Assembly (NCBI GenBank): GCA_051294905.1
Contig: CM119378.1
Location: 13,764,001-13,828,000 of the forward strand
Direction of reading: 5' to 3'
Source: Botryllus schlosseri
Lineage: Eukaryota
DNA length: 64,000 nt
Shown: piece after piece, positions 1,388 through 29,500 of the stretch
How the letters are laid out: every line of letters starts with the position of its first letter
How positions within the stretch are numbered: the stretch's first letter is position 1
The notes under the pieces: model-generated
The model's database searches: none
Told to the model about the DNA's origin: nothing
The model's input: the letters and a program-made list of their open reading frames with translations, nothing else
Translations under genes and position numbers: made by a program

Positions 1388-1948
1388 TTACCCTGCGGGA
1401 TGTCATTTGTCCTGTGGGGTTCAGATCGCCAGGACAGGAACATTCGGCGCCAGCCATTTAGGCACCTATATGGACAATTAAACATAGCCTATATGCATTA
1501 ATTTGTATAATCGAAGTTTTCGGTCAGCAAAAGGCATTCCTTTTCGGCCAAGGTCCTCTCGCTGCTGATCGTTCTGGCACACTTCTCGGAGTCGCATGTT
1601 ACATGGCCTACAACAGTGGTTCTTAATCTTGCCTCCAGCGCCCCCCAGGGGGCGCTGGCGATTTTGAAGGGAGGCGGAAACGCTCAGGGGGCGATATGGG
1701 GGGCGCTGGGCTTAGGGGGGCGGTATGGGGGGCGCTGGAGAAAAATGGCTTCGCAGTAGATGATGTGGTAGTATGACATATCCTTAATGAGTATATTCAG
1801 AGCGAATTAACACCGAAAACTTAGATATTTATAGCCTACAAAAGACATATAGGTTTAATTGTCCATAGGCGCCTAAATGACTGGCACCGAATGTTCCTGT
1901 CTTGGCAATCTGAACCTCAGAAGACGAATTCCATCTGGCAGGGAAAAA
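1388..1948. repeat. Inverted repeat pair (~1388-1499 vs ~1843-1948)
   Basis: GGTTCAGATCGCCAGGACAGGAACATTCGGCGCCAGCCATTTAGGCACCTAT and its diverged reverse complement ATAGGCGCCTAAATGACTGGCACCGAATGTTCCTGTCTTGGCAATCTGAACC. Confidence 0.75.
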
Positions 1949-4900
1949 GGTACAAGTGTAGTAAAGGCCGTAAATAGTAACGGGGTATAATGGGAACACT
2001 GAGTATAGTTAGTGAAGTGTTGCACTATGTACATGTATATGTTGCACATAAATGGGAAATATGCGGGTTGATTGGGTAGTACGACCCATATGGAACATGT
2101 GAAAAAAAAGCCCTAGGATGTTAAAACGTAGATTTGCCGTATCCAGAAATTACGACTGGAGTGGGCGTTTGCGAGCAAGCTGTAAAATCCAAAAATATCT
2201 CATTTTGTGCAGAAGCATACCGACAACATTATGCGCTCGGTAAAAAAGGGAAATATCATACAAATGCATGTATCCAATCTTGAATTTTACTGGCGTTGTT
2301 TTGGGTAAGGTTTGGCGGCGGGAGATATATATAGCGCGCCATGAATTAGATTTTAAAAATCGGACAGACCAAGACGACGATTAAACAATGAGGGAGGTTA
2401 TTCATGCAATAGGCGCCAATCACAACAGAACTGGACTAAAGTGACACGTCTGGAACTGACGGTCAGATATAGCCCTTACGAGAATGTGGTTTTCACATAT
2501 AGCAATGTAAATTTAAAATGGCGACATGTTTTAATAGGTTTAAGTAGTTCGTTTCAGGAAATCTACACCCGTGGAAATTGTTAGTGACGCAACGGCGGGC
2601 TTCGGCAAAAGTAATACCAACCACTCCGGTTTTCTCCCCGACCGAGTCAATATCATTTCAAGTGAATTTATCATTAAATCTCCGAATGCAACATCGGTGA
2701 CGGGTAAGCAAGATAATTTCCATCATGCTACCACACTGGTGTATTTATCAGTCGAATGGCGACGAACGGAGTAGGGCGACTCGATGCAGGAGCTGACTAC
2801 GACCACCCCTGTATCACGCGAATTTTGCACCACGAAATATACGTCAATTGACCTCAGCTTTACCGTTATCGCTAAAGAAAACCAGCTACCTGACAAGCAT
2901 CTCGAAAGTATCACAAATGAAGGGGAACACATACATACATCGTAAGAAACCTTTCATCGGTGGTGAGCAATTGGGAGTAGTTTCAAAATGTTACCCAAGC
3001 TGCCATAATTGTTGTATTAATAATGATAATGTGGGTGGTGTCTCGTTAACGCAATAAACGCATTAGCGCGGAATGATTGAAAGGCATAATAGCGATTACT
3101 AGTGACGTATATGGACATTGGACATCTTAGGTCATTACTCGGAAAACGACTAGCATGAAAAGAACAACAACCCGATAGTATGATTGCTTCGAAAATGTGT
3201 TCTCGGAAACGTATTGCTGGAATAGAGCCCGTGTTTCTGTAATCCGTCTGTGTGCATGGACTTTAAATTGAACTTATGACCATATGTCTAGTTTTATAGG
3301 TAGATATCAGGCTTGATTAGACTGGCCCGGCTCAAACGATCAAGGTTTTGGTCCGGCCCGCGACGCTAAATCGAGTTTGACATTCCCGTCTATGGTTGAC
3401 CGTATACGATAGATCAGAATTAAAGGCGATAGTTACTATCGTCATTTGCGTCCGGTATAAAGCACTCCGTAATGACAAAAGTGATACAACATCGCGCAAT
3501 GAGGCTGTACGTACACGTGTGGTAATATTGAATGTTAAAATGCAAAAGTATTGGCGCACAAGCACATACTGGGTATTCAGTCAGTAAATTGCCTCTACGC
3601 GTGAGATCTGTAATTTCTCTAAATTCGGTTTTAACTTCCGGACGCCCGTTTACCAATAAATAAAGGCTCTTAACTTGAATTGACCATTGTGACGCGAGTC
3701 CACTTTACCTCGGCATTTTCATTCATCGGCCTGGTTAAACTATTTGTAAAAGTGTCGCACTCGTTTCTGCGGTCATGGGCTAAATTGATACATGAATGCT
3801 TGCTTGCTTGCTATAAATTGGTTGTGAGGATAATTCCCTTGGTCCACTAGTTCTTTTTGGACGCATGGCGAGACTCAATATCACCTCGGTTAAAGTTTAA
3901 ATCGTACAAGGCATATGGTGCCAGCCATCCGGCCTGGGTAACGATCCTGCATGGTCGGGGCAGTACTTGTTCTGCCCAACATATTTCGATCAAAATGTAA
4001 ATTTTTAATTAATGATTTCCTCCATAGAAATCACCACACGGAGTGTGTAAAACATTATAATTTAATACGTCATACCGTAGTCGTGGAACGTGATACTGCG
4101 ATTTTGCTCGGATTGTCGTTGTTGGTAAGTTTGTAACGCCACCATCGTATTCTAGAAAATGGGGCAAAAACTGATATAGTTCGCAGGTTTCGTGCAGTAG
4201 ACCGGAGTAATACTTATACTGCTATGCGCCAAGTCTGTGTAGTACGGGCAATAAATCTGTGACGGCAATCGTGTCTTAACAAAGTACTGCAAAATCGAGT
4301 TTGCAGCTAATGTTCTGCCTTATGTCATTCTTATCGCGTGCGCGGCGAAAACGCTCCATCACCAAAAATGGGAAACCCATGTTGTAATATTCTTTTTGTG
4401 TGTGCGGTTTTTGGGAGGGTCATAAGTGGAAGGCAGGCGCTCACGGCATGCCGTGAGAGTAGAAACATTCCGGTACTACTACAACGTGCAATTTCTGGAA
4501 AGGAAACACCACTGGCCATCCGGATATTAATCCCTTATGTAGGAATGTAGGAGTTTTTGTGACAGTTTCCTGGGGCGCTGGGCACGGTAATTGACTTCGC
4601 AAAATAGCAGAACGATTATCTTGTCATCCACCAAACCCTTTTAACGATGACGCAATTCCTTACTCTGAAGGCATATAAGCATTTGTACGTTAACTTCTTC
4701 ATCAGTATGTACTTAGGTTGGAGTTAGATAACAACCTAATCGTCTATCTTTGTAGTTATACTCAGATGAAAGCTTGGAGAAACTGAGGTTGACTTATTCA
4801 TATTTACATATGTGTATGACTGTATGTTCCTGTACTCGTCTTTATGTACGAATGTATACCATTGGTATTATGCGTATTGTCCTATCATTACAAGTAGACG

Positions 4901-7900
4901 TAGAATAAGGACTTGGAATGGATCAGTCTGGTCTACATATAGCCTACATAGCTACACGACCGAGATAACTATGGGTTGAAAACTACTTACCTGTTGGAAA
5001 ATTATTTTGTTTTGCGTATATATATGAGCAAAGATTTGAGGTCAGCTACATCAAATAAAAACATAGAGTGATCAGAATCGCTTCAATATCTAAGTGAGTA
5101 TCGTAACTCGAGCAAGGAATCCTGTATCAGATGTATGGGCACTAGGCAGTCTGCACTATTGTGAAATTATCGATTGAACTCACAAGGCTATTCTTACATC
5201 TACGCTTTTGGCTTTCGGAATCAACAAGGTGCGTGTGCAACTGTGCATTAGAGTCGTACACGCGATGAAGTATTTTGTATACGTCTTAATTAATGGTGAT
5301 AACAGTAAGTGCTATGTTTCCTTCATATAATTGGGGAAGCGGTCTTGCGAGTATAATAGTGTTGGGTGGCCTAATTGTTCTGTAATTTAGGACTTTATCA
5401 TAGTGTGCTATCGCCATTCACCTTGACCAGAGTTTCTATGTGAGCCTGTTATAGGATTTGGAACCGTCCCACTATAGTATTTGAATTTAACAAATATACA
5501 ATTTGAGCATTTCATTGCGCATTATTATTGGAATAAGCTTTAAATTGGTAAACTAACTCGCAAATGGGTCGGCAGTTCATCGTATTGGGTTAATTTGTCT
5601 GCAAAATCTATTGACCTTGAGTCATGGCTTCTATTTTGGAAATTTATGTTGATTTGACTAAGAAATTGACTTGAGTCACCTCTCTAAAGAGGAGTAAACT
5701 GATTTGGCTTGAAACAAGGGTATAGATTGAATGTCGTAACACGGGCAACGAACAAGATTTGAACTTAACTGTGGAAACAGTGACTAAATTGTAACTTCAA
5801 TTGTTACGTCATAAATTCATACACGGGCATTACTTTCAATTTTTCTTGGGACGCTCAGAATGGCGTCATGGCCGGGTTTAGATCAAGACTTTGAAATATT
5901 TTGGCGAAATCAAGGTTCTCGGTTGCAAGCAAGTCGCTTCAACAAGCCTAAATTTCAGAATTGGGAAATATGTGTATATCAAGGTCTTTAATCCGATTTC
6001 TATCCAAGTAACGATGTGGCTATTAAAACTAGATCGTATAATTAAGGAAGGTGGCATCATGTGGCGTGTACTTAGAAATCCAAATGTAATAACGGTATAA
6101 TGAATAATGGTGCATACGCATGTTTTGTTTTGCAGCTAATTTAAGGCCTCGGTTTGAATTTGATTTGACGCATATTGAGAGCATCCCTATACTCCCTAAA
6201 CCAGGGGTGGCCAACTTTTCTCTATGTATGGCCATATTCTGTTTATTAATATAGCCTACTGCCGTATTCCAGTGTTCGGTTGTGAAGTAACTGGACGCCC
6301 GATATCCCATGTTAAAAGATCCGTGCCCGATGAAGTAAGGACTAATGTGTTTGTTCGTATCGGCTTGGGCGCGCCGAGAGAAGTCATGTCACGAGTAAAT
6401 ACTGCGATTTATCGAATCCATATATGAATTTCGTCATTGATATTTGTAGTTGCAGATATTGCTATATAGTATTTGTCCTTTCCCGACCCCTATGGTGTGA
6501 TTCATCATTATTATCAATGAGCGTAAGTCTTCGAAAATTGGTGCCTAATATTAATGATGATGTATCTTTGGGTGGGACAATTGTTATTGATTTAAAAAAA
6601 AAACGGTAGATTTTACGCTAAATAAATGCACAATTTTTGCATTCATCAACATTAAGAGTTTAATTTTGACAAAATTTTGCATTCAAGTATTAAAATTAGG
6701 CATTGTTCACATAAGGTTGGTCTCTGCATTTTGGGTTGGAACTAGCTGTCCTTACGAAATACCTTGGCAACAATAGCGACTAAACGTTCCACAGTAGCAG
6801 TTGTGTTCTAGCAGCAATGAGGGTCAGTGTATACTGTGGATGCGCTGATAACACACCCGTTGCTTGATACCAACAATGTTGTCTACATCGTATTTTAAAG
6901 ACCGCAACCTAATAACACTTTTGCTGAGATGTCGCGAAACACCGATCTGTTAAGAATCACTTTACTATGAGAAACAATGTCCGTCAAGCCGTCAAATTTC
7001 AGATTCAGAATTACGCTATGGGCGTAAGTTTGGGAAAACATAAGACCCTAAAATAGGCTCCAGGGTGTGGTCTAAAAAAGCGAGAGGATAGGGTCACAGC
7101 CGCTGCAATCTCTACGTAAGAAACGAAATGTTGTTTGCAAAGCAAATTTGAATTACGTACAGAATTTTGACAATTTTTTTAACCAACGATATAATTTTTG
7201 AATTTCTCATGTATATCAAAAAATGGTCGCCCTAATATTGGTCATTTCGTTACATGCGTTGGTTTCTTGGCCTCCTATCGGGATTGGGAAAAATGTTGGA
7301 CTCGCCTAGGTGTGCCGTAAACGACACTCTTTCGTGAGACGTACCCAATTCCCAAGTTGGTATTTTTTATGGATCACCTGATTTTCTTCTGCGGCTCGCA
7401 TTTGTGCTGCGGGGATCAGATTACACGACACTGCGGAGTTGGAATCGTAAAATCAATTCGCATCAAATCGTGCGTGACACGATGGGAATAGCGCTAAATC
7501 TCGCCAAAGCTGATTCTGTATCCGCTGCATAAACAATGCTTCAGATATATGCTAGGGCTTAACTCAATTTAGCAGCTTTGCGCATATGTGATTATTGACA
7601 TTACCGATTTTCCAACATTTAAATCTGTGCTCGTTCGCTGTTGAGGATAACCATAGGTACCCGGTCTATATACTGATCAGCTAATATAGTGCAACGAATC
7701 ATTGTGGTTGATAACTCTTTTGTAGACCCGACTCGGCATGCTCAGAACCACCTACTAATTTGGCTAGCACAAGAGATGTCATGACTCAAGATCTATTGTC
7801 GCACAAAGATGGTGACATATTTTTGAAACCAATGTGATTCCCTATTATTAGAAATACTCGCCAGCTTGTAACACTATTATGGTGTTCCCTCACTTTGCGT

Positions 7901-9164
7901 AAGCGCTGCTGTATTAGCGCAGGTTAGAAGAAAATAATTGGTCAGTAAAAGTGCTAATACTATTTATTCTTGATTGAACTAGCAAATTGGAGATCATACG
8001 AAAACACCCCATAATACTGAATACACCCCGTAGCCAGGGTGGACAATAAACCTATATGTTGGTATATGCCTTACTTTTCGTGTTTAAATTCTGTTAATGA
8101 TCCCTATTTGTGGCAACGCGATATGGCGTTAGTTACCAGAAACGACGCCGAACTACCCTGCCTAAAGGTTTGAATTTATGTGACACTTCCCCTATTTGAG
8201 ACGAAATATTTTCTGTGTCAACACCCGTATGAATTAACCTTTCATATCTATAAATGTGATTTATGGCGCACATATGATATTATTGATTGGCTAATAATGG
8301 GTTATATACTACTCTAATTGTGTACAGTTGGTATCGGGCATTTTGTCATCATGGTACTGGTAGTTATTAGCCTATGTTTAGTGCGACTGCGCACTAACCT
8401 ATTTGCTTGTAGATATCCTATTATTATACTGGATTGGGTGTAATCATAATGCCCTTTATAACCCCCACTCCTAAAGGGAGGCAGCGCACTGTGATTAACA
8501 GACGCTGCGCCTCGTCGCCATTTGAAAAATAAATTATTCTGTTTGAGGAAGAACCATGCTCACATTCTCTACTGCCACGACACTAGGGAATAGCATGGCT
8601 TCATGGCATCCTCCGCTAATTAAAAGAAGGGGAGGGGGTGACTTCGTTGTACATATTTTGTGGTATCCGTCAGAAAATGAAAAGGATAAAAAATGAATAA
8701 AAAAAATTTTGATGCTTGTATGTAGAACATTAACATTTTAAAGAAGTGCAAAAGATTAAAAAGTAACCGAAAATGCGAAAAATATATATATATACATCCC
8801 TACAAAAAGAGCCGCGTTCGGCCAGAAAAAAATGTTTTTATTTTTATTTTATCAGACAATTATTGATGCGAGCCAAGCGAATCATTTATATCCCCTTTTT
8901 GAATCCCCTAGTGCAGAGTTTTGCATACGCGTCAACTCGAGGAATAAAACTGGCCTAAACGTGGATATCACCTTGAAGGTGAATGCTTGGTAGATTGCCG
9001 TGATTAAGCTGAAATTCATTTTGTAGATTATTATAGTTATATATGTTTATTTCCGTAAATTTGTATCATGTATCGTAATTGAAAAAAATGATGCTAGTTT
9101 TAAGTGCAAACCTGAAGCTAGCTAACCCTAAAAATAACTACTTGTATATTATTAATTGAAAATT

Positions 9165-9276
9165 ATAATGCAAATACCCTTAGTACTGCAAATGCACTAC
9201 TTAATGCATAGCAATGGTGTATAATGCAAATACCCTTAGTACTGCAAATGCACTACTTAATGCATAGCAATGGTGT
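9165..9276. repeat. Perfect 2 x 56-bp tandem duplication
   Basis: ATAATGCAAATACCCTTAGTACTGCAAATGCACTACTTAATGCATAGCAATGGTGT at 9165 and 9221. Confidence 0.95.
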
Positions 9277-12200
9277 AATATATGTACCGTACACGGAATG
9301 CTTGGAATTCGCTTGTTTTTTGATATATCAGTGTACTAACAACAATGAAATACTGATGATATAAGTCAATTATGTAGTTATGTATACATTAATTAGATCG
9401 ACACGGTCTCTTTAGGATTCCGGTAAGGTCGACATTCCCCCCTAAAAGCTAAGAAAATAGCACCATTATAGCTACTAGAGTATGGAGAAGGCTATAGTAA
9501 CTGAAAAGAATAGCGGTGGTCTATATGAATCACCTAGCTACCCATATGAAGCTGCTAATACGGAATAAGCCATCGCGGAAGCGACAGATATGTAATCACC
9601 CTGTCTTGTTTGTATTGATTATTATAATTATAAATCTGTAACCTTACGCATAAAGACAATGCGAAGAAAGTAATGCTGAATAATACTTGGTCAAGAATAA
9701 TATCACTAGTAGTGCGCCATATTTGGCACGATAGCTGTGTTCATTGAGCTAAGACGGTGGCATTCTTGACACTGGAGTCGAACCTATATGCGTAATTGCA
9801 GAGTTTGGGCTATATCCTCCCGCCCCTATGTAAGAGTGGATGGACCCTGAAATCGAAAATCAAATATAAAAGTATATAAGTATTATGCCTAGCAGGGAAT
9901 GGCTTGCCTGGTCATAATATATAAAAAAAACTTAAATACCATCAAAATTTAATGATTGGAAAAGAGTGGGCAGTTTCGGATGGTTGATTGGAATGAGCTC
10001 GCCATAACTTGTGGTATATTTGCTTGGCTGGATAATTTCATTGGCGTCTTTATATAGTGCGGCGTAGCCATTCAATCACCAGTACGGAACTGAAACTATG
10101 GTTTGCGATGTAATTGTGTCGAAAATAGAGTGATGCTTATATGGAATTGTCGTATGCATGCCAGTTTTACGATCGTGCTGCTATTAAATGGGGCCACCAT
10201 TTTTCGTGCATGCGAACTTTTGCAGTAAGTGTTGCCGTTATTTTATATTAGTGTATGCATTTTATATCTATGTGTCATGTGGTGCCCACACGAATTGTAT
10301 ATCAGCTGTGGTGAACAGTTGTTACCCATGTAGGTAGCATGAATGCCAAATTCAACCACCACCACCACCACCGAAGCAGAACATCTAAAGAAGTGTCCAG
10401 ACATCCACAAAACATTGACCAAGGCATTGAAAGAGTCTGACGTCATTTGGGCTCGAAAGGTGATGTTCGGATGTCCCCCTAAAGGCTCTCAAGCATACAT
10501 TGATAGGATCGCCTGCTTGCCACAGTTGTAAGGTGCACAGAAATGATGCAGCGCGATCAAATGCGCCGGTACAGCTCCATGAAACAGATGAATTAAAGAT
10601 GGACCGAACCAGAACAGTAACCGAGATATATTGCATTTGAAATCTCGCTACGACAGAGCCACGGACGAAATCCCGTATCCTGATGGAATTCCCTTGCCCC
10701 GAATAGACACGAAAGTATTTGAAGAAACGACTCAACAAGACATCAATGCCTCAATTGAAAATGGATATCTACATCTGAAAAGACTGCAATACTTTTATGA
10801 CTGAACTGGTGATCTGCCAATTGGTTGGCTTGGACTCTGAGTGTTGATACTTTTGTGGGCATCTAATGGCATATCACTTGTATATTATATACGATTGTAT
10901 GGCAGGAAAGGCCATCACATCTATTGTGAAAACAAACCTTGGAGAATTATTTTGAATTTCGATTGTGCATGATGATAAATAGGCTAACATTTGGTTTTAT
11001 ATCAGTATGTACAATGTGCATAGAGATGCCCTATTGTTATCTGCGTGATCTTATTGAAGTATTTGGTTGTTATAAGCTATATTTTAATTATATATTGATT
11101 ATTATGAGCCTCTGGGCCTGGAAAGGTCATTGCTTACTTCGATCAAGCTGCAGCCAATACTTCAATCCGCGCCACCGATCACCAACAAGGCGCGTAAAGG
11201 GGGTGACGAAAGCGTAACGAACTGGGATGACGTTCAACACTGTGAAGCAAATTGAACGAAGTGTAGACTACCCGCAAAGCAATCGTTTTGGGGCTACACT
11301 ATAAAAAACTGGAGGTCCCAACCGTTTCTTCCGGTGTTAAACGTCATTTCCCGGCAGTTCCAGAGGACGGGGGAGAGTCTGGAGACGAATAATTGTCGAT
11401 CAGCACTCTCCTATCTGCAATTGCCAACCGGTACACAACCCCTAACGTTTCCTCGTCTCACCTATGGACTCATAGCGCCAGATTGAGAAGCTCACGGCAG
11501 AAGCCAACGGTATCACATCCGACATCTCGTACCAGGACCTTCTACTTGGACGATTAGCCGAATTTCCAATTTTCGGCAGTGTGAGCGCGAGCACTGAGCA
11601 TCTCAACTACGAAAACACACAGTATACGTTGGAGGCAGCGTCAGGACTGGACGCAGAATCCAGTAGTCCAAAGCAACACATCGCAACCAAGAATATATCA
11701 TTGAACAGAAAAAAAAAGCTCGCCCGAAACGCCACTGGTCAGACGAACGTATTCAAGAGGAGAGACTCAACCTATATCGCAATGAAAATAACCCCATCAA
11801 GGGGCAGTCAAGGGACACGTCAAATCGACGAAAGCCCTGGTACGAAGTGTAATTTCCTGGCCGATTCAGGACACATCAAAATTCTAAATACATCATCTCT
11901 ATTTTATGTACATCCCCTGATATCGCGTATGGCCCGACACCAGAGGTGGTAAAAGTGATCAGCATGAGCATTGAGCATTGGCAGTTAAGTAGAAGTATCT
12001 ATTTCCAGTATAGAATAAATGATTAAAAAAAAAAAGTAAATTTCATTGGCGGTTCCCTTTGTAGCAGTAAATCACAAGTGGTTGCTTTGGAAATTGCAAA
12101 ATGAATATTCGCAACTTCCCAAAATGTCACAAGACACTGCGAAAACAGCAACTTTCAAAAATGTATTTGGCCCCTATCTTACTGTGGCTATTTCAGCAAG

Positions 12201-12381
12201 TTCCTGCTATGACAGTTCCATTTATAAAACTAAAACAACCCGATTCCAAATCTTCTGTCTACTTCTGAGTAGCTAAAATGTGCATAGTAAAAGTAGAAGC
12301 AGTCTAAAAGGATGATCAAGAAGAGGGTAAAGGAAAAAATGCTGACACTATGTCACCCCTACCACCAGTGCATATTTATAA

Positions 12382-14298
12382 TGTGCAACCACCGGGGCTG
12401 CCTGCCTGCCGGCTGGCAGGCCTCCCCAATCTTCGCTAGCAACCGGACGTCAGCGATACCCAGCACCAAATCGTAATCCGCCGCCGCGGCGAAATCCTGC
12501 CCGAACAGCTGAAACAAATCGTTTTCCTAATGACGTGATGGCCGGTGAAAACCCCTATCGGAGGAGCGCTGCACCCGGGGGGCAGACGGGATCGCGGGTC
12601 TCAGGAAGGTCGGGAAGACAAGCCCGACGCTAGAAGAAACAACAACCCGCATTCGCGAAACTCTCAGAACGTGCGAACGGCTCCGGGAATGCCAGCGTCA
12701 GACCAGAGGGGACGCGGCCTTTCGCAGACTCACGACTCGGGTGTCGGGGTAGACCATTCGCAGTTGACGCCGTCCAGCAGTCAAGAGGCGAGCCAGATTT
12801 CGAACACCCAAGACACAAAAACAGCTGCCTACCCACAAAGCTGGACTGAAAGACAGCCTCTCGAAATGAAATTGCGCGGCATAGGAGGATCATCCTGTGT
12901 CAACTTTGTCGTCGTCATCAAGCTGGACGACCTACCAGTACCGTTCGCAACTGGTGAAGGAGTCCCGTTAAACATAATAGGACTGAAATGGATTGAGCAA
13001 GTTCAACAGCTACCCTCAGTAGCAACAGAGTTAAAGGACCCCACTACAGTAAATTATGAACTATCATTGTCCGTGTATTCGGACGCGGCAAAAACCATAG
13101 CTGGAAGCAGTACTTGCAACGCTGCTACTGGTGATGGGTCGGTGGAAGCTGCAACGTTACACAGCGTCGAGACTGGAAGCCCAGCTGACGCCCCACGGGA
13201 CCAAAGATGTCCCTGCCTCTCGGAAGGATTTTGCGCCAAGTGTGGAGAAACCACAGATACAAAATTAAGTCGGGTGAGCGCTGTGACCCCGAAATCCTTG
13301 CGTGCTGAGCGCGGAAGCCCCGCTAGCACCTCTCAGGAACATTATGTTAAAGAGATTCCTGAAGACAACGGCCACTGCATTCGCCACGATAGAAGAGTGG
13401 GAATCGTTTACGACGGCCCCATGGCCGCAGCAGTTGTGCCGCATACCGAGAAGATTACATTGAAAGCAGCTGTCGACATCCACACTGAAGTGACAAATTT
13501 CGTGGATAAAGAAGAGTCTGGAGGCGATATGCAAGCCTCTCCAGAAAAAGGGCCCCCGTCGGGCGTTGAAACCGCCGGCGTGAAGTTGGATGCGGGCACG
13601 CAGCCCCTTCAGAGGCAGAAAAAATCGAGTGTGGAAGCCCCACTGAATACAGTTACCCTCGCCCTCTCTCCACCGACATCAAAACCGCGCCACGGCCTCT
13701 ATAGACATGGTCGCGGCCCGATAAAAGCGTATGAACTGTATGATGGAACTGATAAGAAAGTGAAGACAGAGTTGGAACGGTTATGCAACCGGGTAGTTGA
13801 ACTTGCTAATCTTCGTACAAACCTCCCGAATGCGTGCCACAACTATGCTTGCAGCAACTCCTAAAGGACAGGTTGGGCCAGGATATTCCGACTACAACCC
13901 TAAAAGAGATCATGCGGGGCTGTACCAGAGCGGCAGTCTCGGATGAGGGGTTGGCGGCCGCACATGTCCATATCGTGGGGGAACCCCCTCATTATGAACA
14001 GTAATTAAATTATGACAAGTTGTATCACATGACTACGCGGACCCGAGCCATACAAATAATGAAGAGCGAACTCATGCGGATAGGCCGGAGGTACGTACAC
14101 CTCAGCTTACACAAGCCACGCTACGAGCACATGCGGGGAACAGCTTTGGAAATGGACTCATGCGATCTCCGAAAACTGGGATTAACTCTATTGCAATCGC
14201 CCAATTCGGACGTGTTTTTTTGTGAAGGCCCTATCCCTAACTCACATATACGACTCGTGCACGGGATCGTGAATCGAACACGATCGAACAGCGCATAA
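12382..14298 (+). pseudogene. Disrupted intronless ORF: long low-complexity N-terminus plus C-terminal Tpt1/KptA-like (RNA 2'-phosphotransferase / ADP-ribosyltransferase) domain
   Basis: The 439-aa ORF 12545-13864 continues after a frameshift (~13810-13860) and one TAA (14002-14004) into LYHMT...GRRYVHLS...LLQSPNSDVFFCEGPIPNSHI. These match the Tpt1/KptA motifs LYHGT, R-x-(H/Y)-V-H-L-S and S-x-N-x-V-(F/W)-L...P-x-x-Y-I in order and spacing. A Pro/Arg-rich open frame from 12382 suggests a further upstream frameshift. Confidence 0.72.
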
Positions 14299-14854
14299 AG
14301 TCATGGGCAAAAAGTAATTAAATTGAAAAATAAAATTGAAAAATATTTTTTAAAAAAATATATTTTTTTCTTGTTTAAATCTGCTTTAAATGTTCAAAAA
14401 TAATACCGCAAAGGGTGGTTGTTTAATGCATATGTTTCCATATGGAATACATGAAATATAAGACCTTAAATGTATACGTAATTTCGATGTTCATGGGGAA
14501 ACACTTGAGATTGGATAAAAATTTATGTGAAACACTAAAATGATAGTGATTCACATGTACGAGTAAAGGACGGCGGCTTGTGCATGAGTTCCGGGAAAAA
14601 TAATATGCCAGTGAAGAAATACCAATTTGAAATCGTGTGCGTCTTTTAGTTTAGTACGATTGGACGACAGGGATAGAACTAGATATCCCCGTTGGGCGAT
14701 ATCCCCAGGTATCCGTTGGGCGATTCTATATTTTTTGATATAGCAGACAGGAGGTCACGAAATGACATCATGCTACGAAGTCATATCAACGGGTCCACCC
14801 GCCCGGCTATGTTTAATTATTACTTACGGGCCCTACAGTTTCCAAGACAGCTCA

Positions 14855-15037
14855 CAATGTTCCCTCTACGTTTTGACGAGTCTGCGCACACTCACAAACT
14901 CACTGCGCAGACCCTTGGACAACAGTGCGTAACGACTAAAAAAAGGTCATAACTTCGGATTTGTTGTAGATTTTTTGTGCGCAGAGACCGTGTCAGCACT
15001 GCGCACGTGCGCACTGCGCAGCTTAGATGGAACATTG
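14855..15037. mobile_element. Short hAT MITE (CAATGTTCCCTCTA TIR family), reverse copy of 39510-39702
   Basis: CAATGTTCCCTCTA...TAGATGGAACATTG ends; interior is the reverse complement of the 39510 element (TGCGCA repeats). TSD degenerate. Confidence 0.8.
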
Positions 15038-15040
15038 CAC

Positions 15041-16300
15041 CTCACTCAGCTCTACCGGCAAATCTGGTAACGTGAGCAGAGAGGACAAGAAATTGATAGC
15101 AATATATATGCAATTCCCGATCTTATTGACCGATTTTATCGTGAATTCTCGAAAATTTTCGCGCTTCGCACTGTCTCGCTAAACAGTACAGCTGATTTCG
15201 TGGCAAAAGCGAACAACGTGATGGGGGGCGGTCGGTTTATCACCCTATGGAAGCCCAATACCCCAGTTTTTTCGGCGGGCCTGACGAAGTGTCGTTTCGT
15301 TCCTGCCAACGGGTATACGCCCTAAGATGTATAATTATTATTGAGGGGTCCTATCATTTCAATCACACATCACGAGCGAGATAGTGTAATGGTTATGCGT
15401 CCAGCTTCTCGAGCGGTAGGTCGTGGGTTCGATCCCCGGCCGGGTCATACCAAAGACTCGAAAAATGGTATCCGCAGCTATCCTGCTATAGGCGCTCAGC
15501 AATCACGGATAGCATGGAGGAGAATAAAACGGGGGCGCAGACTAGATGACCTCATGGGGCCGTATCGCAACTCCGTCGCCAAAGCATCTCGATGGTGCAG
15601 GCGAGAAAGAATATCATATCTCTCTCTCTCTCTCACTCAGCTCTACCGGTAAATCTGTTTACGTGAGCAGAGAAAGGATAAAAATTGATATTAATATATA
15701 TGCACTTCCCGATCATATTGACCAATTCAATCAATAATTATTGAAATTTTTCGCGCTTCGCGCGTCTAGGCGAGAATAGCTGGCTCAGTAAATGCACACC
15801 CAATGTAGATGACCAGTATCAACAAATAGCGGATAGCCGAAGGGGGCTCTGGGGGCGGATCCCCCAGGAAGTTTGGTTTATCTCCCTACGGGGGACTCAA
15901 GACCAACATTTTTTGGGGGGCTGACGAAGTGCTGTTACGGCCCTGGTAACGAATTAATTGTACCTACGGGCACGCCCGAATATGTTTATTATTAATTACG
16001 TGCCGTTTATTTTCCAATACAACAGCTCAGCACTACTGGTAAATCTGATTACGTGGGCTGAGAGGATAAAAAGTTTATAGCGACATATATGTAATTAGTA
16101 ATTACCATCTATTCATTTATGCATTATAGAATATTTTGGCACCTAAAGCGACCAGGCCTAGGCCACACAAACTTTGCTGACCATCGAAATCACGCGGCGG
16201 GGTTCTTGGGGCGAAGCCCTCAGAAGTTTGGTTTATCACGCTATGGGTGCGCAAGGCAATCGTTTTTAGGGGAGTTGACGAAGTTCTGTTACGGCCCTCC
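15041..16300. repeat. Three diverged tandem units of ~300-360 bp (about 15041-15335, 15633-15995, 16022-16300)
   Basis: Each begins CTCAGC(T/A)CTAC(C/T)GG(C/T)AAATCTG..ACGTG.GC.GAGA and later has GGTTTATC...TGACGAAGT. Units 2 and 3 have GC-rich GGGG..CT.GGGGCG.A.CCC motifs. Confidence 0.8.
15374..15635 (+). mobile_element. tRNA-derived SINE
   Basis: Pol III A box TAGTGTAATGG and B box GGGTTCGATCCC, then GTCATACCAAAGACTCGAAAAATGGTA (a body motif I recognise from animal SINEs) and a (CT)n tail. No tRNA acceptor stem. Confidence 0.75.
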
Positions 16301-16636
16301 CTCTTACTCATTGTTTTTGGTACATTCCTTGCAATATGAGGTTGGGGGGCGCTGGAGCCCGATAATCTTTGAAAGGGGGCGCTGGAGGAAAAAAGGTTAA
16401 GAACCACTGGCCTACAACTTCATGTCTTGGTGCGTCGAGGGCCGAGGCGCAGTAATGGCCGACGCAGAAGTCTCCATATCTATAAATCATGCGTATTTTT
16501 GTTGGGGGAAGGGTACCAAATAATTAAGATATTTGGCAATCTTAAATCGAGTGCGAGAATATTTTGAAAAGGTTGTATAAATTTCCAAAAAAATACAATG
16601 TTGATATACAATGTTCTTTCCAATTCTCTACTAGTT

Positions 16637-16681
16637 GCTGACGATTACCCCTGACGAGTGTCAGCCGAAAATATTCGGGTT
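16637..16681 (+). ncRNA. Minimal type I hammerhead ribozyme (intact core)
   Basis: Helix I ACCC(16647-50)/GGGT(16677-80); core CTGACGA(16651-57); G-C pair closing loop TGTCAGC; GAA-A(16667-70); palindromic helix III AATATT; cleavage triplet UUC (cut after 16676). Loop II pairs with upstream GCTGACG (16637-43). Confidence 0.75.
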
Positions 16682-16812
16682 CATTTCAATATGAATATAC
16701 TATTTAATTGTATATTGAAGTTCTGTACCTCCAAGAAGCTCTTCAAAAAAATACTGTATAATTTATGTTAATTCACGAAATAATTTGCCCCCCCCCCCAA
16801 TTTTGTGTGCGG

Positions 16813-17035
16813 CAGTTACGGTCCTGCGTATGGTAACCCTAAAATCAATCCTGGAATGAATTGTTTCATACGCAGTGTATAATCTCATACTGACTCATTG
16901 CTCGTCATACCAATGAGTGGGATCGCAATTTTCAGTTACGGTCCTGCGTATGGTAAACCCTAACATCAATCCTGGAATGAATTGTTTCATACGCAGTGTA
17001 TAATCTCATACTGACTCATTGCTCGTCATACCAAT
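16813..17035. repeat. Tandem duplication, ~120-bp period
   Basis: CAGTTACGGTCCTGCGTATGGTAA...GCTCGTCATACCAAT at 16813 and 16933, near-identical. Confidence 0.9.
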
Positions 17036-17775: not shown

Positions 17776-18927
17776 ATACAATATCAAAACGGCAAGCTGA
17801 AAATCGTGAACACCCGCACGACCGCATCATATCAGCAGAACACTATAACCCAGAACTGAAAACAAAGCAATAACACCGCTGCGCTTCATCATCACCAGGA
17901 GAGTCTCAAATCTCCATATCATCCACCCGGGAGAGACACCAGGTCCATCCCATCACATGCGCGCTCACATCAGTTTATCCAGTGGAACAGTAGGCTTATG
18001 TACGAAATGCAGCAATCGTTCATGTATTTCCGTATCGATATAGCACACTGCAAGGCCGCTTCTTCCATCAGTTCACTATGCATGTCGTAGTCGAATTGTA
18101 GTACCGGTACAATCCACATCTCTTCCGAACTGTAGTCTGAGAAGTTGAAATACAGATGCAACGTTTTACCTTGTTAGCCATTTTATGTAGCTGATGACAG
18201 CAACTAGGCTACTACAGATCGAAGCGTCGTAGCCAAATATCAAATATAAAACTGCCCTAAAAGAGCACGGTTGCTACTCCGGTACTGGTGTACTACATAT
18301 ATTCCATCGTAAACAAGCGAGCACTTACAAAGTAACCCCACTTTTCCTTGCCATGTTTGTCCAATTTCTCAACATCAGATGGAAAACATGAATTACGATG
18401 CCAAGAGCCCGCGCGGCAAAAACCAGCGCCGTAGAACGAAAATCGCCGGACGCCGATGACCAAATACTCAAGCCGATCGTAAACCACATTACACAACAGC
18501 TTGAGGCTCGAGTCGACTTGAAGCAGTTTGCCTTTCTCTTTTCATCGAATACGAGAGAGTCGGATCGACGAGTCAGCTTCGAAGCTGACTTAAACCGTCA
18601 TGTAAATGGGCCTAATGAGTGGGATCGCAATTTTCAAATCTCAACTGCAGCATATACGCGCACTTTGATGATCACTGATCAGTGATCACGCCATGACGGA
18701 GATTTCATTAATTAGCGATGTTAGTTTTCGTGTTGGGATTTTCACCAGGTGGATACATACAACGTGTACGACGCGGTGAACAGATCTTGTTGTTGTTCGT
18801 TTTTCGTAAGGACTTGTTAGTGCAAGAAATTCTGGGCCACATGAAAAATTTTGAGTGAGATGTAGCCTACTTGAGAAATTGAATGTTCACTACTCATTTC
18901 GTCGGAAATGTTGCTTTGACTGAACAC

Positions 18928-19454
18928 TAGGGCTCTTCAAAACTGACTTTTTTTTCTCAAATCGTACTGGCTACTTGATAAAATTGCTAGGTTACCTAAT
19001 TTAAGCCTACACACAAAATTTGGTTCAATTCCAGCCAGCACCCGCTTTGCCACAGGAGAAGAAAGTTTCTATTTATTATATAAAATTAAATAATAAACAA
19101 TTCGGATTTGAATAAAATAGTATTTACGGTGACCGATTCTTTGTTTATTTATTATAGTTGTGCTCACCGCAAATACTATTTTATTCAAATCCAAATTTTT
19201 CGACGGCAATAACTCCGCTTCCACTGGTCGGAATTATACCAAATTTGCTTTCACTTTCATTGGTGAACAGAAAATTTTCAAATTTTTTATCATTTATTTT
19301 AATGTAATAAATAGAAACTTTCTTCTCCTGTAGCAAAGCGGTTACTTGCTAGAATTGAACCAAATTTTGTGTGCAGGCTCAAATTAGGTAACCTAACAAT
19401 TTTATAAAGTAGCCAGTACGATTTGAGAAAAAAAGTGATTTTTGAAGAGCCCTA
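18928..19454. mobile_element. Long-TIR MITE (TAGGGCTCTTCAAAA ends), internally deleted copy
   Basis: TAGGGCTCTTCAAAA...TTTGAAGAGCCCTA with ~160-bp imperfect inverted arms. Its core is the reverse complement of the core of the 20744 copy. Confidence 0.85.
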
Positions 19455-20743
19455 ATTGCTCACGTTTCAAGTAGGCCTACATGGACATATTTAGCTCACG
19501 GGACATAAGATTTGCCACAAAATAGTTGAATTCATATTCGTGTGTCCCTACACCCCAGTCTTCAATAATGAAGTGTTGTTATCGCCGTAGCCTAGGCTCT
19601 CCCAAGTCGGGTGACAAGTGAAAACCAGAAAACCGCTTCACTGGTTTTGTTGTGGTTCAAGTATAATTTTTTTATAATTCCTCTCTATATGCTAATGTTT
19701 GAGAAGACATTATCGGTTCGCAATCTGCTATATCTCTTTTCAACCGGAATAGCAGAACGCACACACACTCAAATGTAATTTATATTGGCAACATTACCTG
19801 GAGCGCCCTCAAAGCACTTCAAAACATTTTTATGACTGACACAGTGCTAAAATGACATATCTATGAAAATTCACAAAGTGGTGATTAAAGAGGCCTAGTC
19901 AGTATACCACCGAGAGAAACGTTACAAATTCTCATATCAGACTCAATTACTTGTGGGCCAGCCTGGCCATGAGTACAGCATTGAAATATTTCTTAAACGA
20001 CTTAATATCGAAATGCAGTAAAAACTGTGTTGGTTTATGACTTTCACAGTTTCACTATTCAACAATCAAATAAAAGTAAGACACCACAACGATGACGATC
20101 ATATTTTTTCTGATTGGCAGTGGGCGCGAATAAGTAGGTCTGCACAAAATCGAGTTCCAGACAGATCAGATTCTGAATTTACTAGCTTCAAGCCGAGTGT
20201 TCAAGAACCAATTATTAGGACGGTACACATTGTTGAAATATGTATCTATTTGGTATTCGCTTTGTGCAAGCACAACGTAATATAAATACTTGAATATTGT
20301 ATGATGCGACAAAGAAATTAATGACAGCTCCTAATCATCAAAAACTTATTATTTCACAATAAGTAATCATAACTATGATAAACCCTTTGTGCCAATGCTG
20401 CAGGTCAACAAAGTCACAGAAGTAACTGCCAGCTTTGTGCTGCATGCCTCGGCGCCTCAGATACTGACTATCGATGTCTCAAGGCTCCCGAGCTGGGAAG
20501 AAAGTATCCAAACGATAATGGGTGCAGATAAAACTCAGAACTCAAGTCGAATCCTTGCAATAGTGTGCCCAGCACTAGGAGTAAGTGTGATTGTTGAATG
20601 CTTGGTGTAAAAGTGTATCTACAAGAATTGAATGATAAACTCCGACCGACTGGCAGTGCGGAAAAGTGTATGATAGTCATATTCAACTGCAAACACGCGT
20701 TGTCACAAGCATACAAGGATTCCCGGTGAGAGAGAGTGCACAG

Positions 20744-21800
20744 TAGGGCTCTTCAAAAATGACTTTTTTTCTCAAATCGCACCGGCTACTTGATAAAATT
20801 GTTAGGTTACCAAATTTAAGCCTACACACCAAATTTGGTTCAATTCCAACCAGTAGCCGCATTGCTACAGGAGAAGAAAGTTTATATTTATTATATAAAA
20901 ATAAATAACAAAAAATTTGAAAAGTTTCTGTTCACCCCATGAAAGTGTTAGGCTAGGCTAACCATATTTTGGAAATCTAAAAAGAGGACACTTTTTCAGA
21001 AATTTGAGACTTGCAAAACCGGAGAAGAATTCTCAAAAATCGGTGAACTTTTCCCACTTTGGGATCAAAAAAAGGTCAACTTACACGCTCAGAGCCCAAA
21101 ATACCGTTTCTTCCTCCACATTGCCGGGTGGTTGAATAAAAAAAAAGGTCATCTTTTCGCCCAGAGCTCAAAATACATTGAGCGTCACTGCTGTGCTAAT
21201 TTACGGCATGTAACTCGCATTTTGCTCTAAATATGACCTAAATTTTCAAAAAAGAGGACAAAAGGGCGTCCTCCGAGGACACTTTCAAAAAAGTCAAAGA
21301 GGACAAATCCTCTTAAAAGAGGACGTATGGTAACCCTATGTAAGGCTGTCTATAGTATCGATGTTCACCAAATTTGGTTGAATTCCAACCAGTACAAGCG
21401 GAGTTATCGCCGTCGAAAAATTTGGATTTGAATAGTAGGCTATTTAGGGTGGGCACCACTATAATAAATAATTAAAGAATTGCTCACCGTAAATAATATT
21501 TTATTCATAATCCAAATTTTTCGACGGCGATAACTCCGCTTCCACTGGTTGGAATTGAACCAAATTTGGTGAACATCGTTTCTATAGACAGCCTAACACT
21601 TTCATGGGGTGAACAGAAAATTTTCAAATTTTTTGTTGTTCATTTTTATATAATAAATAGAAACTTTCTTCTCATGTAGCAATGCGGCTACTGGTTGGAA
21701 TTGAACCAAATTTGGTGTGTAGGCTTAAATTCGGTAACCTAACAATTCTTTTAAGTAGCCGGTGCGATTTGAGATAAAAAGTCATTTTTGAAGAGTCCTA
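20744..21800. mobile_element. Long-TIR palindromic MITE, same family, carrying a nested hAT element
   Basis: TAGGGCTCTTCAAAAATGAC...GTCATTTTTGAAGAGTCCTA with ~300-bp arms. Flanks GTGCACAG/GTGTCCAG (6/8) may be a decayed 8-bp TSD. Confidence 0.85.
20954..21338. mobile_element. Nested hAT MITE
   Basis: TIRs TAGGCTAACCATA/TATGGTAACCCTA; 8-bp TSD TGTTAGGC/TGTAAGGC; AGAGGACA subterminal repeats. The empty site can be reconstructed from the opposite arm of the host MITE. Confidence 0.85.
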
Positions 21801-22014
21801 GTGTCCAGTCAAAGCAACATTTCCGACGAAATGATGGAAACAGCGAAAAGCTTTACAACAACAGCTTCACAACAGTTACGTCGAACCGTATTACAAAATC
21901 CCCATGTGATTACGACAGGTACGATTCGAAATCGCAATACACGTGTTGCCGGAATGTGAACTGAATCGAATGACCATCGTAACTTCTAGGCCATTTCGGA
22001 AGAGCCCGAACCCC

Positions 22015-22653
22015 TCAACCGCTATTCACAAAATTGCTAAGCAATATGGCAAACACAGCGACGCCGGCGAGGACCGCAAGGTTTAAAAAACCCGGCTGCG
22101 TTTCAGCCGTGCGGCTCGGTTCCAAAGGGTCTTCGACATCGTTCGATGTGCTATTTTCGATCCTTTCCACGAGATCGGGGAATAAGTTGCGAAAATTAGA
22201 GTCACGTAAATTAAACTGTCCGCTTCGTCTCGCTAATTTTCTCTTCATGAGGTCCGACGTTTCGATTGAACCCAGTGTCGGAGTCGTTTCCACCATGAAA
22301 CTTAAGAGTCCAGTTAAGATAGTGCCCACTGACCAAGCCGGATTCCAAGTGTCTGGGTGAAAGTCGCTGATCGATAGACAGAGCCTTGTGTTGCACTTGA
22401 AACGGCCCGACGGCGTCATCATGTAGATTGACGGTGGCTTGAAAGGGAATTCGGTAGGAAAGACAAGCTTGCCGTGGTACAGCCCGCCGTCATATGGGGT
22501 ATCGCTTGGCCCGACTACCACGTAGTGCCACTCGAGGATATTCGAAGACAACGGTTCCGCTACTATGAACGGCACAGGGTCCCTTTTCAGTCTCATGTAA
22601 TCCTGCTTCAGGCGCTGCGTAGCTGTCCTTGGAGCAATACGTTTTTTATCCAT
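22015..22653 (-). CDS. UBE2J2: ER-anchored ubiquitin-conjugating enzyme E2 J2 (Ubc6), single coding exon, 212 aa
   Basis: ATQRLKQDY..DPVP...EPLSSNILEWHYV...YHGKLVFP.EFPFKPPSIYM.TPSGRFKCNTRLCLSISDFHPDTWNPAWSV is the Ubc6/J2 signature with the catalytic Cys in LCLS. Hydrophobic C-terminal tail anchor. Confidence 0.96.
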   Translation of the reverse strand: MDKKRIAPRTATQRLKQDYMRLKRDPVPFIVAEPLSSNILEWHYVVVGPSDTPYDGGLYHGKLVFPTEFPFKPPSIYMMTPSGRFKCNTRLCLSISDFHPDTWNPAWSVGTILTGLLSFMVETTPTLGSIETSDLMKRKLARRSGQFNLRDSNFRNLFPDLVERIENSTSNDVEDPLEPSRTAETQPGFLNLAVLAGVAVFAILLSNFVNSG

Positions 22654-26511: not shown

Positions 26512-29500
26512 CTGCAACAAGGCAAAAAACAAATTACATTACGTCGTCGCAATATATTTGAACCAATGTCGCAATGCAGCGACCATCAACACCATCTACT
26601 ATGGTCGTCTACACCAGGCCGATATTGCCTATTTTTGATTCCGTAGCTGCCAACTTCTAGTACGGCCCACTTCCATCCAGGCTGTTTTAAGACGCCGCTT
26701 ACGTGGATGAGATGGTGACGAGGAGCCTAGAACCCGCTACCCATTGGTGTTGCAGCTGCGCATCATACCACTACGCTATCTAGCCACATGCATTAAATCG
26801 ATGGTGGCTGCTTACGAAATGACAAGATGCATCATCGCGACTGACTCAAGATGATGGCACTTATACCCAGATACAATCTCCAAAAATATATTCAACAGAT
26901 ACCTACATGGCTGTTTCACACGGTACTCATGACAATATTACGCTTAAAAGTTGAACAAACTTAGTAAAGCAGTTCTGGCTAAAAATGTTCAACTAAAAGT
27001 GGAAGTAGACTGAAACTACTCGCGTATGCCTGCTTGGAAAAATGTAAGTATGTCATTGCTGACCATGACCACCTCCAGGGAAAAATGGTATCTCAATTTC
27101 TCAACATTGTATGATAGCAACTGCAAAAGCAAACTTACGTGTTCAGGTGAGTGCAAAGATATTTAAACGTGACGTAGTTGGGACTAGGTAACTTCCTTAC
27201 TACTCCGCGCACAGCCAAATTTCGCATCGAATCGGGCATTTCTGTAAAGGTAAAAAGACGACGATGGGAACATTTCGTTAAAACTCAAGGCTGGTACAAA
27301 ACTCAAATAGAGTTGAAAAAATTCTTGATCGACCGATATTACGACAAAATAATGGTAAATACGGCTGGGTCACTGGTTAATTCCTACGCAGGACAGAGGC
27401 CGGAATGTTTCCAACTATAGCAAGGATCTGGGAAGATCGTGATTACACATGTATCTACGACAGGGGTGGGCAACCTGCGGCCGCATGCGATCTTAGAAGG
27501 AAATTGGTGCGGCCGTTGACACGCAATTCAATTAGTATGCGCTGGTGGCCGTCGACATGCAAATTGAATTTACGAATCGACTCCCAAATTTTTGTGAGAT
27601 CTTAATTAATCTCGATAATTTCTTTGCGCAATTCAATGCGACTGCATTTGTCAATTTTAATATAGCAGCGACCCTTGCAATTCGAGTCGCACAGTACAGA
27701 TGCGCCCCACAGAGAAATACCATCTTGGAATCGTATGCTCCTCACGAAAGAAATTAGCTTCTGGTAAGTTTCAGAGATTCCAATATATTTCTACTATACC
27801 GACAATCCTGATGGGAGTTCAAGAAATTACAGCATGCAACTAAGTGACTAATAACAATTGGCCCACCCGAAGATGCATCGCCATTTATAACGAGCTCTAA
27901 ATGTTCGAAAACACTACCTTCATCAACTCTTCCGGTGAATCTGATCATATGGGCTGAGAATCGATAAATGTTTGATAGTCATATGTGAAACTACTAGCAT
28001 AAATGACGAAATGCAATCGTGAATCTGAAAAATTTTACAGCTTCGCGCGAACATAAATAGTCCCGGTAGCTGTTCATAACATAGCCACTCGCGATTTCGG
28101 TGCAGATAGTGAGTTGATATCAATAAATAGTTAAGTTTGGAAATGGACATATTAACGTGGTTGTTAGGCGTCCAGTTAGTTCATTACGACCATGCCGTGG
28201 AATGCGGACTTGAATAGCACAAAGGTAGGCCACCCCTGATCTATGAGATAATCCCAGTTTTTGCCTGATAGTAATTCCATGGAAAGACATTAAAAAAGAA
28301 CAAGTGACATGAATGGAGTACATTCAAGCAGTCACTGAGATCCATGTCCGCATTCAGAGTGAATACGGAGTCTGCAGCATGTACAGTACAGTCATACACA
28401 CAAATGGATTATGCCAGTGACACATTTGATCACGTTGCGGAAAGACCAAGACCGCTAAATTCAAGCACAATAAAATGAGAATAGGGAACGCCATTCAATA
28501 CAGCAGCGTTTACACAGCAGTCATTCATCACTTCCTTCTGTCTCAATCCATACACACACTAACTGTGCATTCACAATTTCATGGCCATTGTGAAAATGGT
28601 ACTGTGTAATAGCTCAAAAGGAAATGGCTTCTACTAAACCACTCTTGAACCATCATAATTATCGCCGTTAGTACTAGTACATAAATACGGCTGCACGCAG
28701 CAGTGGCGCAAAATTCCTCTACAAGCGGCATTGACAGAGCTAACACCAAACGAAACATGACATAAGCAAACAGCAGACACATACTTATGGCTTCTTCTAA
28801 CTCTTCGTGAAGATGTGAAGGTATGAGCGGTTCGGGGAGATTTTTATGACTGAAAAACCAAGTCAAACATCCGGCAATGGTCTGCACAGTGACTGATAAA
28901 CTCGACAAGTCCACGCTATGGTCTGAACGGAAGAAATAGCTTCGTAAACGATAATATATCACTTTTTGTGAACACACAGATAATTTACCTTCATCAAACC
29001 TATTCAAGACATTCTCCCGTTCTTTCGCGTTTGCAGGTATTCGGTACAACCCTTCGTTCGATATACCTGAAACAGAAGTAACAATGTTAATCGGTGGAGA
29101 TAGGCGAGTCACGAGTCAGCGGTTATGTGGCTACACCTTTAGTAGTTCAAATAATATCAAGCGATTACATTGATCAAATTTTGGACAGCAATAAATTCAA
29201 TACGACTAACTATACGAATACGGCACAGGTACTTTCAATACAATCTCTGACGTTCGACAAAATTAGGTGTTGGAATCAAAGCTGGTTAGGCTGTGAGGCA
29301 TAACTACTCATGCCAATACGTAGATATATGGTCTGTTTATTCGACGTAACGAGCTTGATTCTAGCTAAATACGGTTCTGTTCTAGTTTGCGTAATAATAG
29401 TGCATACTAGCACAGTAATCGTGCATAAATTCATTTCTTCATTATATAAACAAGTCATTCTTCCTCGTCACGTCACAAAAACCCTACTTGAAAGTAGGAA

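Follow-up and report, generated by a model that had tools for sequence, protein, structure and literature searches.

The 14.8-kb stretch at positions 1614-16409 of a 64,000-nucleotide segment of Botryllus schlosseri DNA (contig CM119378.1; the whole analysed segment is called the window here, its first letter being position 1) lies between the two ends of a hAT DNA transposon and is an ordinary nest of transposons, not a gene-carrying vehicle. About 85-90% of its span is other mobile DNA. We favour, with modest confidence, an account in which a short non-autonomous hAT element inserted first and was then nested in place by that other mobile DNA. A sequence-only reading of the window had offered two accounts of the interior: a Pack-type element transporting captured cargo, or a miniature inverted-repeat transposable element (MITE) inflated by nested insertions. 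The latter is supported by a repeat that is split in two, by the duplication flanking the block that splits it and by the hallmarks of a retrocopy. Pack-type cargo does not fit these same features: most of the interior lies between the two copies of a separate duplication within the split repeat, and the retrocopy likewise has a duplication and a poly(A) tail of its own, which are marks of insertion and not of capture.

Both outer ends of the element were read directly. The left end (at 1614) begins CAGTGGTTCTTAATCTTGCCTCCAGCGCCCCC and the right end (at 16409), taken as its reverse complement, begins CAGTGGTTCTTAACCTTTTTTCCTCCAGCGCCCCC. The two terminal inverted repeats have 30 matches over 32 and 35 nt, with two mismatches and one 3-nt insertion or deletion, and their outer 13 nt are identical. 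Perfect copies of this terminal 13-mer are found in the window only at these two ends, and a search of the window with a 17-mer terminus gave a single additional weak site, at 50148, with 2 mismatches. No partner terminal repeat was found in the window near either end. The sole interior near-match to the terminus (6950-6962, 2 mismatches) has neither the motif GGGGGCGCTGG nor the flank GCCTACAA; a composite element built from two MITEs was ruled out, as the inner copies of the terminal repeat are absent. The weak site outside the element (50148-50164, CAGTGGTTGTTAAACTT) is a solitary word resembling the terminal repeat, with neither the subterminal motif nor a partner, and is either a chance match or an old solo end.

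The element is flanked on each side by the same 8-bp word, GCCTACAA. Two random 8-mers of the window are identical with P = 2.4e-5, a value that rises to 3.8e-4 when both are limited to the pattern nnnTAnnn. The word is mildly over-represented in the window (6 copies observed against 1.5 expected), with one copy at 1834, inside the element. Given the chance probability of 2.4e-5 to 3.8e-4 for such a flank match, the GCCTACAA duplication is therefore real and both ends were inserted together. The concern that the flanks might match by chance, attached as a caveat to the sequence-only reading, can thus be set aside despite the six copies of the word.

Further evidence for the nature of the element comes from its subterminal regions. 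The motif GGGGGCGCTGG is present in exactly six exact copies in the window, every one of them no more than 125 nt from an element end (Table 1). With up to one mismatch allowed, 8 matches are observed against 0.23 expected from shuffled sequences. These subterminal motifs presumably act as transposase-binding sites. The terminal inverted repeats of hAT elements start with YARNG, and both termini described here begin CAGTG, which fits this motif. When compared by eye with a published table, the outer 16 nt of the right terminus (CAGTGGTTCTTAACCT) are identical at 15 of 16 positions to the SPIN/hAT-N1_AC terminus CAGTGGTTCTCAACCT; likewise, the pattern given for SPIN-like termini, CAGYGGTTCTCAACCT, is matched by eye at 15/16 positions. 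The duplication has TA at its positions 4-5 and agrees with 5/6 specified positions of NYYTARRN, the duplication consensus of SPIN/hAT-N1-type families (PMC3014272), while nnnTAnnn duplications are a signature of the Buster family (PMC3517528).

Pfam scans covered open frames of at least 50 amino acids inside the element (84 frames) and of at least 85 amino acids in the remaining window, and detected no hAT transposase (BED finger, RNase-H-like core or dimerisation domain), no other transposase, no reverse transcriptase (RT) and no integrase. With no transposase detectable, the element is therefore non-autonomous. Judged from its sequence, 1614-16409 is genuinely a hAT element, non-autonomous and of the Charlie/SPIN-Buster kind. 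Direct reading confirmed what had been described of its ends beforehand, namely matching terminal inverted repeats, subterminal repeats at both ends, identical 8-bp flanks and no partner repeat. The earlier assignment to Charlie/Buster-type hATs also holds, on the nnnTAnnn-fitting 8-bp duplication, the CAGTG terminus and the subterminal motifs, as does the statement that no transposase is recognisable. A scan of metagenome, viral and prokaryote contigs for the terminal-repeat pattern gave 0 matches, and eight proteins of the window, looked up by exact sequence, had no entry in the collection searched.

The interior is dominated by a single block. Self-comparison revealed a repeat of about 230 bp, R, with a copy in minus orientation in the left flank (1299-1524) and a homologous copy, R', that lies in two parts within the element. 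When these two parts (1811-1948 and 14601 to about 14790) are joined with one copy of the 8-bp word GGGAAAAA kept, they align without a gap to the flank copy across the 1948/14601 junction. The DNA between them, 12,644 bp (12.65 kb) or about 85% of the element, has GGGAAAAA on both sides. The GGGAAAAA copies and the gapless junction mean that the block was inserted secondarily into R and made an 8-bp duplication there. Its ends have weak inverted similarity (12/22 of the first positions, empirical P = 0.0037, in the single register fixed by the duplication). No long terminal repeats (LTRs), no internal long repeats and no clear terminal repeats were found in the block, and Pfam scans together with a tblastn search using the polyprotein P0123, described below, found no recognisable transposable-element protein in it. 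The repeat R has a partial copy at 909-963, and its only full copies in the 64 kb sit around the left end of the hAT element. The flank copy lies 82 bp outside this end and R' lies 197 bp inside it, the two being mutually inverted; the position of R beside the left end could be a coincidence or an end-associated rearrangement.

Within the block, positions 10047-12038 have the make-up of a textbook retrocopy of about 2 kb, of the L1-type, target-primed kind. The right copy of its 13-bp duplication, AATTTCATTGGCG (12039-12051), follows directly after the tail, and the chance of an exact 13-bp repeat flanking the segment is estimated at about 2e-3. In its AATAAA, its A11 tail and its 13-bp duplication the segment resembles L1-type retrocopies, processed pseudogenes and non-autonomous retroposons. 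It differs from them in that no homologue or source gene was found for 10047-12038 and in that RT is absent. The block also holds a dispersed non-coding repeat next to an A10 run (Table 1). The similarity between 6425-6588 and 27850-28015 was considered as a possible captured exon and rejected, since it crosses frames and stops. Separately, a 56-bp tandem duplication was noted in the block at 9164-9277 (2.0 copies, 100% identical), and its perfection indicates a very recent local event.

The right part of the block contains a G+C-rich stretch (52-55% at 12.3-14.0 kb, against about 40% around it) with an open frame of 439 amino acids, a length that no frame reached in 2000 shuffles. This frame has no detectable homologue in the search and belongs to no Pfam family; nor is it similar to either open reading frame (ORF) of contig L001, which encodes P0123, or to the ORF that precedes the Tpt1-like gene of contig L003. 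Its single-sequence AlphaFold model, with a predicted local distance difference test (pLDDT) score of 35, is uninformative.

Overlapping the end of this frame is a region related to the Tpt1/KptA RNA 2'-phosphotransferases (PF01885). By tblastn and a hidden Markov model (HMM) of its clade, the homologous region covers 13810-14295 in a single frame, broken by a TAA at 14002-14004. PF01885 itself scores 18.7 bits over 14005-14295, below the Pfam cut-off of 26. Positions 27-76 and 85-164 of the clade profile were found on either side of the TAA, and positions 1-26 were not found in any frame of the window copy. The end of the 439-residue frame (LYRHG...) was tried as the N-terminal RH motif of the Tpt1 domain and dropped, its clade HMM score being -1.9. 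The clade profile, with the window piece included, matches solved Tpt1 structures with E = 7e-14; the family assignment is therefore sound, and the relatives P0121 and P0123 pass the PF01885 cut-off at 43 bits.

Enzymes of the Tpt1/KptA family have a catalytic Arg-His-Arg-Arg tetrad and an IRAxQGHS motif. Sequence alignment indicates that the clade retains LYH.T, R..R..VHLS and CEGPIP-type motifs, which, together with the profile match, it shares with the family. The Arg of R..VHL is kept, that of IRAxQGHS is absent clade-wide, and the N-terminal RH was not seen in the window copy. The clade thus differs from typical PF01885 members in lacking the IRAxQGHS Arg and, on L001, in placing the domain at the C-terminus of a polyprotein, and the window copy differs further in being interrupted by a stop and scoring below the cut-off. 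On its score and its interrupting stop, the window copy is a homologous but degenerate relic and not a working gene. The intact Tpt1-like ADP-ribosyltransferase gene of the sequence-only reading has accordingly to be given up, as the relic has an in-frame stop, its N-terminal part is undetected and its relatives form only a rare clade.

Exhaustively searching 1.84 billion representatives with HMMER returned just four true relatives of the relic, three of them short fragments from metagenomes or the Sequence Read Archive (SRA), and no recognisable host TRPT1 is among the five matches listed. The fourth relative, P0123, is a protein of 1003 amino acids with RVT_1, RT_RNaseH and a C-terminal Tpt1 domain, encoded at L001:1497-4508 (an ENA ERZ781364 contig of 5370 bp) after a gag-like CCHC ORF. 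In a tblastn comparison of this RT-RNaseH-Tpt1 polyprotein with the window only the Tpt1 part matches, and no RT remnant was found. A metagenome scan for further loci of the Tpt1 clade found none, a viral scan yielded two matches of just 31-32% identity, and a word-based search with the P0123 C-terminus recovered P0123 itself only. A literature search found no paper that links PF01885 to retroelements or shows the RT-RNaseH-Tpt1 arrangement.

Together, the 439-residue frame and the Tpt1-like relic are probably a decaying coding unit derived from a transposable element rather than a captured host gene. It is this G+C-rich unit that gives the interior its foreign look. The link of the Tpt1-like clade to retroelements comes from the single contig L001. 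It is a tentative suggestion, and on present evidence a doubtful one, that the relic belongs to an undescribed lineage in which a domain resembling NAD-dependent RNA 2'-phosphotransferases (Tpt1/KptA) serves a retroelement as its accessory enzyme, with RT-RNaseH-Tpt1 encoded after a gag-like CCHC ORF as on L001, the unit in the window being a decayed, RT-less derivative that was brought by the 12.65-kb block.

Without the block, the backbone of the element is at most about 2.1 kb long and is itself a mosaic. It contains a MITE of 183 bp, MITE X, with a second copy at 39510-39702 that is flanked by CTGAAGAC and CTGAAGAT, a 7/8 duplication. Members of the MITE X family are about 185 bp long, end in CAATGTTCCCTCTA-type terminal repeats and have an 8-bp duplication; they are probably hAT-type MITEs as well. 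At 14855-15037 MITE X has no clean duplication, and its flanks are too ambiguous to order the insertion events. Three diverged tandem units of about 380 bp make up the right of the backbone, and a partial tail of such a unit is found at about 14796-14854. An insert of about 260 bp that resembles a short interspersed element (SINE) is found in 1/3 of these units. The label SINE-like rests on its A- and B-box motifs only, because neither ARAGORN nor Rfam made a tRNA call. The components that the sequence-only reading had named are all present in the interior: a segment ending in poly(A), a SINE-like piece, tandem units and a similarity to Tpt1.

It appears from this arrangement that the nest could have formed in three steps. 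A short SPIN/Charlie-like hAT element would have been cut and pasted at GCCTACAA by a transposase supplied in trans; this original backbone, of at most about 2.1 kb, would have consisted of the terminal repeats, the GGGGGCGCTGG motifs and the ~380-bp tandem units. The element would then have served as a landing pad, as the R copy, the 183-bp MITE and the SINE-like element all sit in its backbone. The 12.65-kb composite block, the largest insertion, would have landed in the R copy and left the 8-bp duplication. The block is itself a mosaic of a poly(A) retrocopy made by target-primed reverse transcription, the dispersed repeat by the A10 run and the decaying coding unit.

Several points weigh against nesting in place. 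The one copy examined cannot separate nesting after the insertion from nesting before the last jump. At least four independent insertions into a target of about 2 kb is many, and some of them may be the family's own sequence. The model has to treat the inverted copy of R, 82 bp outside the left end, as a coincidence. Moreover, the case for the block as a transposable-element insertion is built on the 8-bp duplication and the clean split of R, and the block has no classifiable ends or proteins.

The most direct competitor is that the element already carried some or all of its load before its last jump, so that a hAT element of 14.8 kb, or somewhat shorter, moved as one block. We regard this as unlikely, though worth serious consideration. 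The two copies of the outer duplication agree at 8/8 positions and the terminal 13-mers do not differ, while MITE X has no clean duplication here and the nested repeats share only 82-85% identity with their other copies; furthermore, several insertions in a backbone of about 2 kb are easier to accept if some of them belong to the master copy of the family. However, 8 bases often stay identical by luck even at 10-15% divergence, and a perfect duplication therefore does not date the insertion; likewise, the divergence between repeat copies measures the age of a family and not that of an insertion. Large non-autonomous hATs are also rare and transposition efficiency falls with length, which counts against a loaded jump. 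A different proposal, that the 12.65-kb block is a DNA transposon of an unclassified kind with degenerate terminal repeats of about 23 nt and with the 439-residue frame and the Tpt1-like domain as its own gene or passenger, is about what the block is and can hold together with nesting in place. We consider it possible but rather improbable. Its duplication is exactly 8 bp, the 12/22 inverted match of the ends exceeds chance at the empirical P value given above, LTRs and internal long repeats are lacking, and the open frame exceeds all 2000 shuffles. Yet the similarity of the ends is weak, they do not fit the hAT YARNG motif, no transposase was found, and an 8-bp duplication could also be left by the repair of a staggered break or by insertion of a non-LTR retroelement.

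It is very improbable that the element is a Pack-type (transduplicating) hAT with captured fragments of host genes, among them a Tpt1-like ADP-ribosyltransferase gene. The long open frame, the Tpt1-like similarity and the raised G+C content at 12.3-14.0 kb would be expected of it, and, as in Pack-MULE-type elements, terminal repeats and a duplication surround DNA that looks unrelated to transposition. Unlike those elements, however, it has an interior with the marks of secondary insertion, not with copied fragments of host loci, and a parental gene is not evident. An 8-bp duplication of its own flanks the block within the split repeat, the retrocopy likewise has a duplication and a tail, and MITE X has terminal repeats of its own. 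In addition, the Tpt1-like sequence is broken by a TAA and falls short of the Pfam cut-off, its relatives are only four fragments in 1.84 billion representatives, one of them fused to RT-RNaseH, no recognisable host TRPT1 stands among the five listed matches, and the 439-residue frame has no homologue. We give least credence of all to the notion that there is no single element, only two unrelated solo hAT ends with a chance flank match or an assembly join; an empty site would read ...ACATGGCCTACAACTTCATG... in sequence. The excess of GCCTACAA in the window, including its recurrence at 1834 inside the element, lends this some support, and against it stand the low probability of the flank match, the exact abutment of the flanks on the two terminal repeats, which are the window's only perfect copies and are inverted as they should be, and the absence of N runs from the window. 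Nesting in place after insertion of a short hAT element hence stays the preferred account of the whole stretch.

Table 1. Features of the hAT element and of the DNA nested in it (window coordinates).
Feature	Position	Strand	Details
Target-site duplication, left copy	1606-1613		8 bp, GCCTACAA
Left terminal inverted repeat	1614-1645	+	32 nt, opens CAGTGGTTCTTAA; GGGGGCGCTGG in reverse orientation at 1635-1645
Left subterminal region	1646-1810	+	GGGGGCGCTGG at 1648, 1699 and 1728; 29-bp tandem pair at 1682-1738
Interior repeat R', first part	1811-1948	+	homologous to R (1299-1524) on the opposite strand; ends in GGGAAAAA at 1941-1948
Nested block splitting R'	1949-14592		flanked by GGGAAAAA at 1941-1948 and 14593-14600
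Dispersed non-coding repeat	6425-6603	+	A10 run 5 nt after it; 69%-identical copy at 27850-28015, minus strand
Retroposed segment	10047-12038	+	AATAAA at 12014-12019; A11 at 12025-12035; 13-bp duplication AATTTCATTGGCG at 10034-10046 and 12039-12051
439-aa open frame	12545-13864	+	in G+C-rich stretch; no homologue, Pfam family or confident fold
Tpt1/KptA-like relic	13810-14298	+	-1 frame relative to the 439-aa frame; in-frame TAA at 14002-14004; AATAAA at 14329-14334
Right GGGAAAAA copy (14593-14600) and second part of R'	14593-14790	+	end coordinate approximate
Nested MITE X	14855-15037		183 bp; ends CAATGTTCCCTCTA.../...GGAACATTG
Three diverged ~380-bp tandem units	15041-16409	+	15041-15631, 15632-16021 and 16022-16409; last ends in the right terminal repeat
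SINE-like insert in tandem unit 1	15370-15632	+	A-box-like TAGTGTAATGGT at 15382-15393; B-box-like GGTTCGATCCC at 15426-15436; (CT)n tail
Right terminal inverted repeat	16375-16409	-	35 nt; GGGGGCGCTGG at 16375; further GGGGGCGCTGG at 16345-16355
Target-site duplication, right copy	16410-16417		8 bp, GCCTACAA

The remaining window holds ordinary metazoan genes, namely p190RhoGAP-like exons, an ADH-like exon and an intronless UBE2J2-like ORF. The last (22015-22653, minus strand) is intact, encodes 212 amino acids and has tunicate proteins among its best full-length matches (60-75% identity); it may be a retrogene. Its best relative, 75% identical, lies on a 1.3-kb contig and so offers no usable synteny. 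Just downstream of this ORF a foldback or MITE-like family is represented by several copies within 3 kb (18894-19454, 20734-20947 and 21369-21834), with inverted arms of about 154 nt that are 91% complementary. Immediately to the right of the element lies a dispersed repeat of about 115 bp (16599-16715), with three inverted copies at 52844-52902, 53210-53316 and 54754-54868, followed by a 121-bp tandem duplication (16813-17035, 98% identical).

Among known systems, the element most resembles the SPIN/hAT-N1-type non-autonomous hATs (Charlie group, Buster side), with which it shares the terminus at 15/16 positions, the 8-bp duplication with central TA, the short subterminal repeats and the lack of a transposase of its own. 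It departs from them in length, being 14.8 kb long (about 2.1 kb once the block is taken away), compared with 135-810 bp for published non-autonomous relatives (PMC3014272). Furthermore, the sixth base of the duplication is C here and a purine in the consensus, the host is a non-vertebrate metazoan, and the element is placed by its ends and duplication, not by transposase phylogeny.

For annotation, the whole of 1614-16409 should be masked as nested mobile DNA; the 439-residue frame and the Tpt1-like stretch should not be listed as host genes or cited as evidence that genes were captured. Because SPIN-like elements are patchily distributed, a clean SPIN/Charlie-like end structure in a non-vertebrate deuterostome has some, if modest, interest. 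An RT-fused Tpt1-like domain, if true in complete elements, would extend the accessory repertoire of retroelements to RNA repair or ADP-ribosylation.

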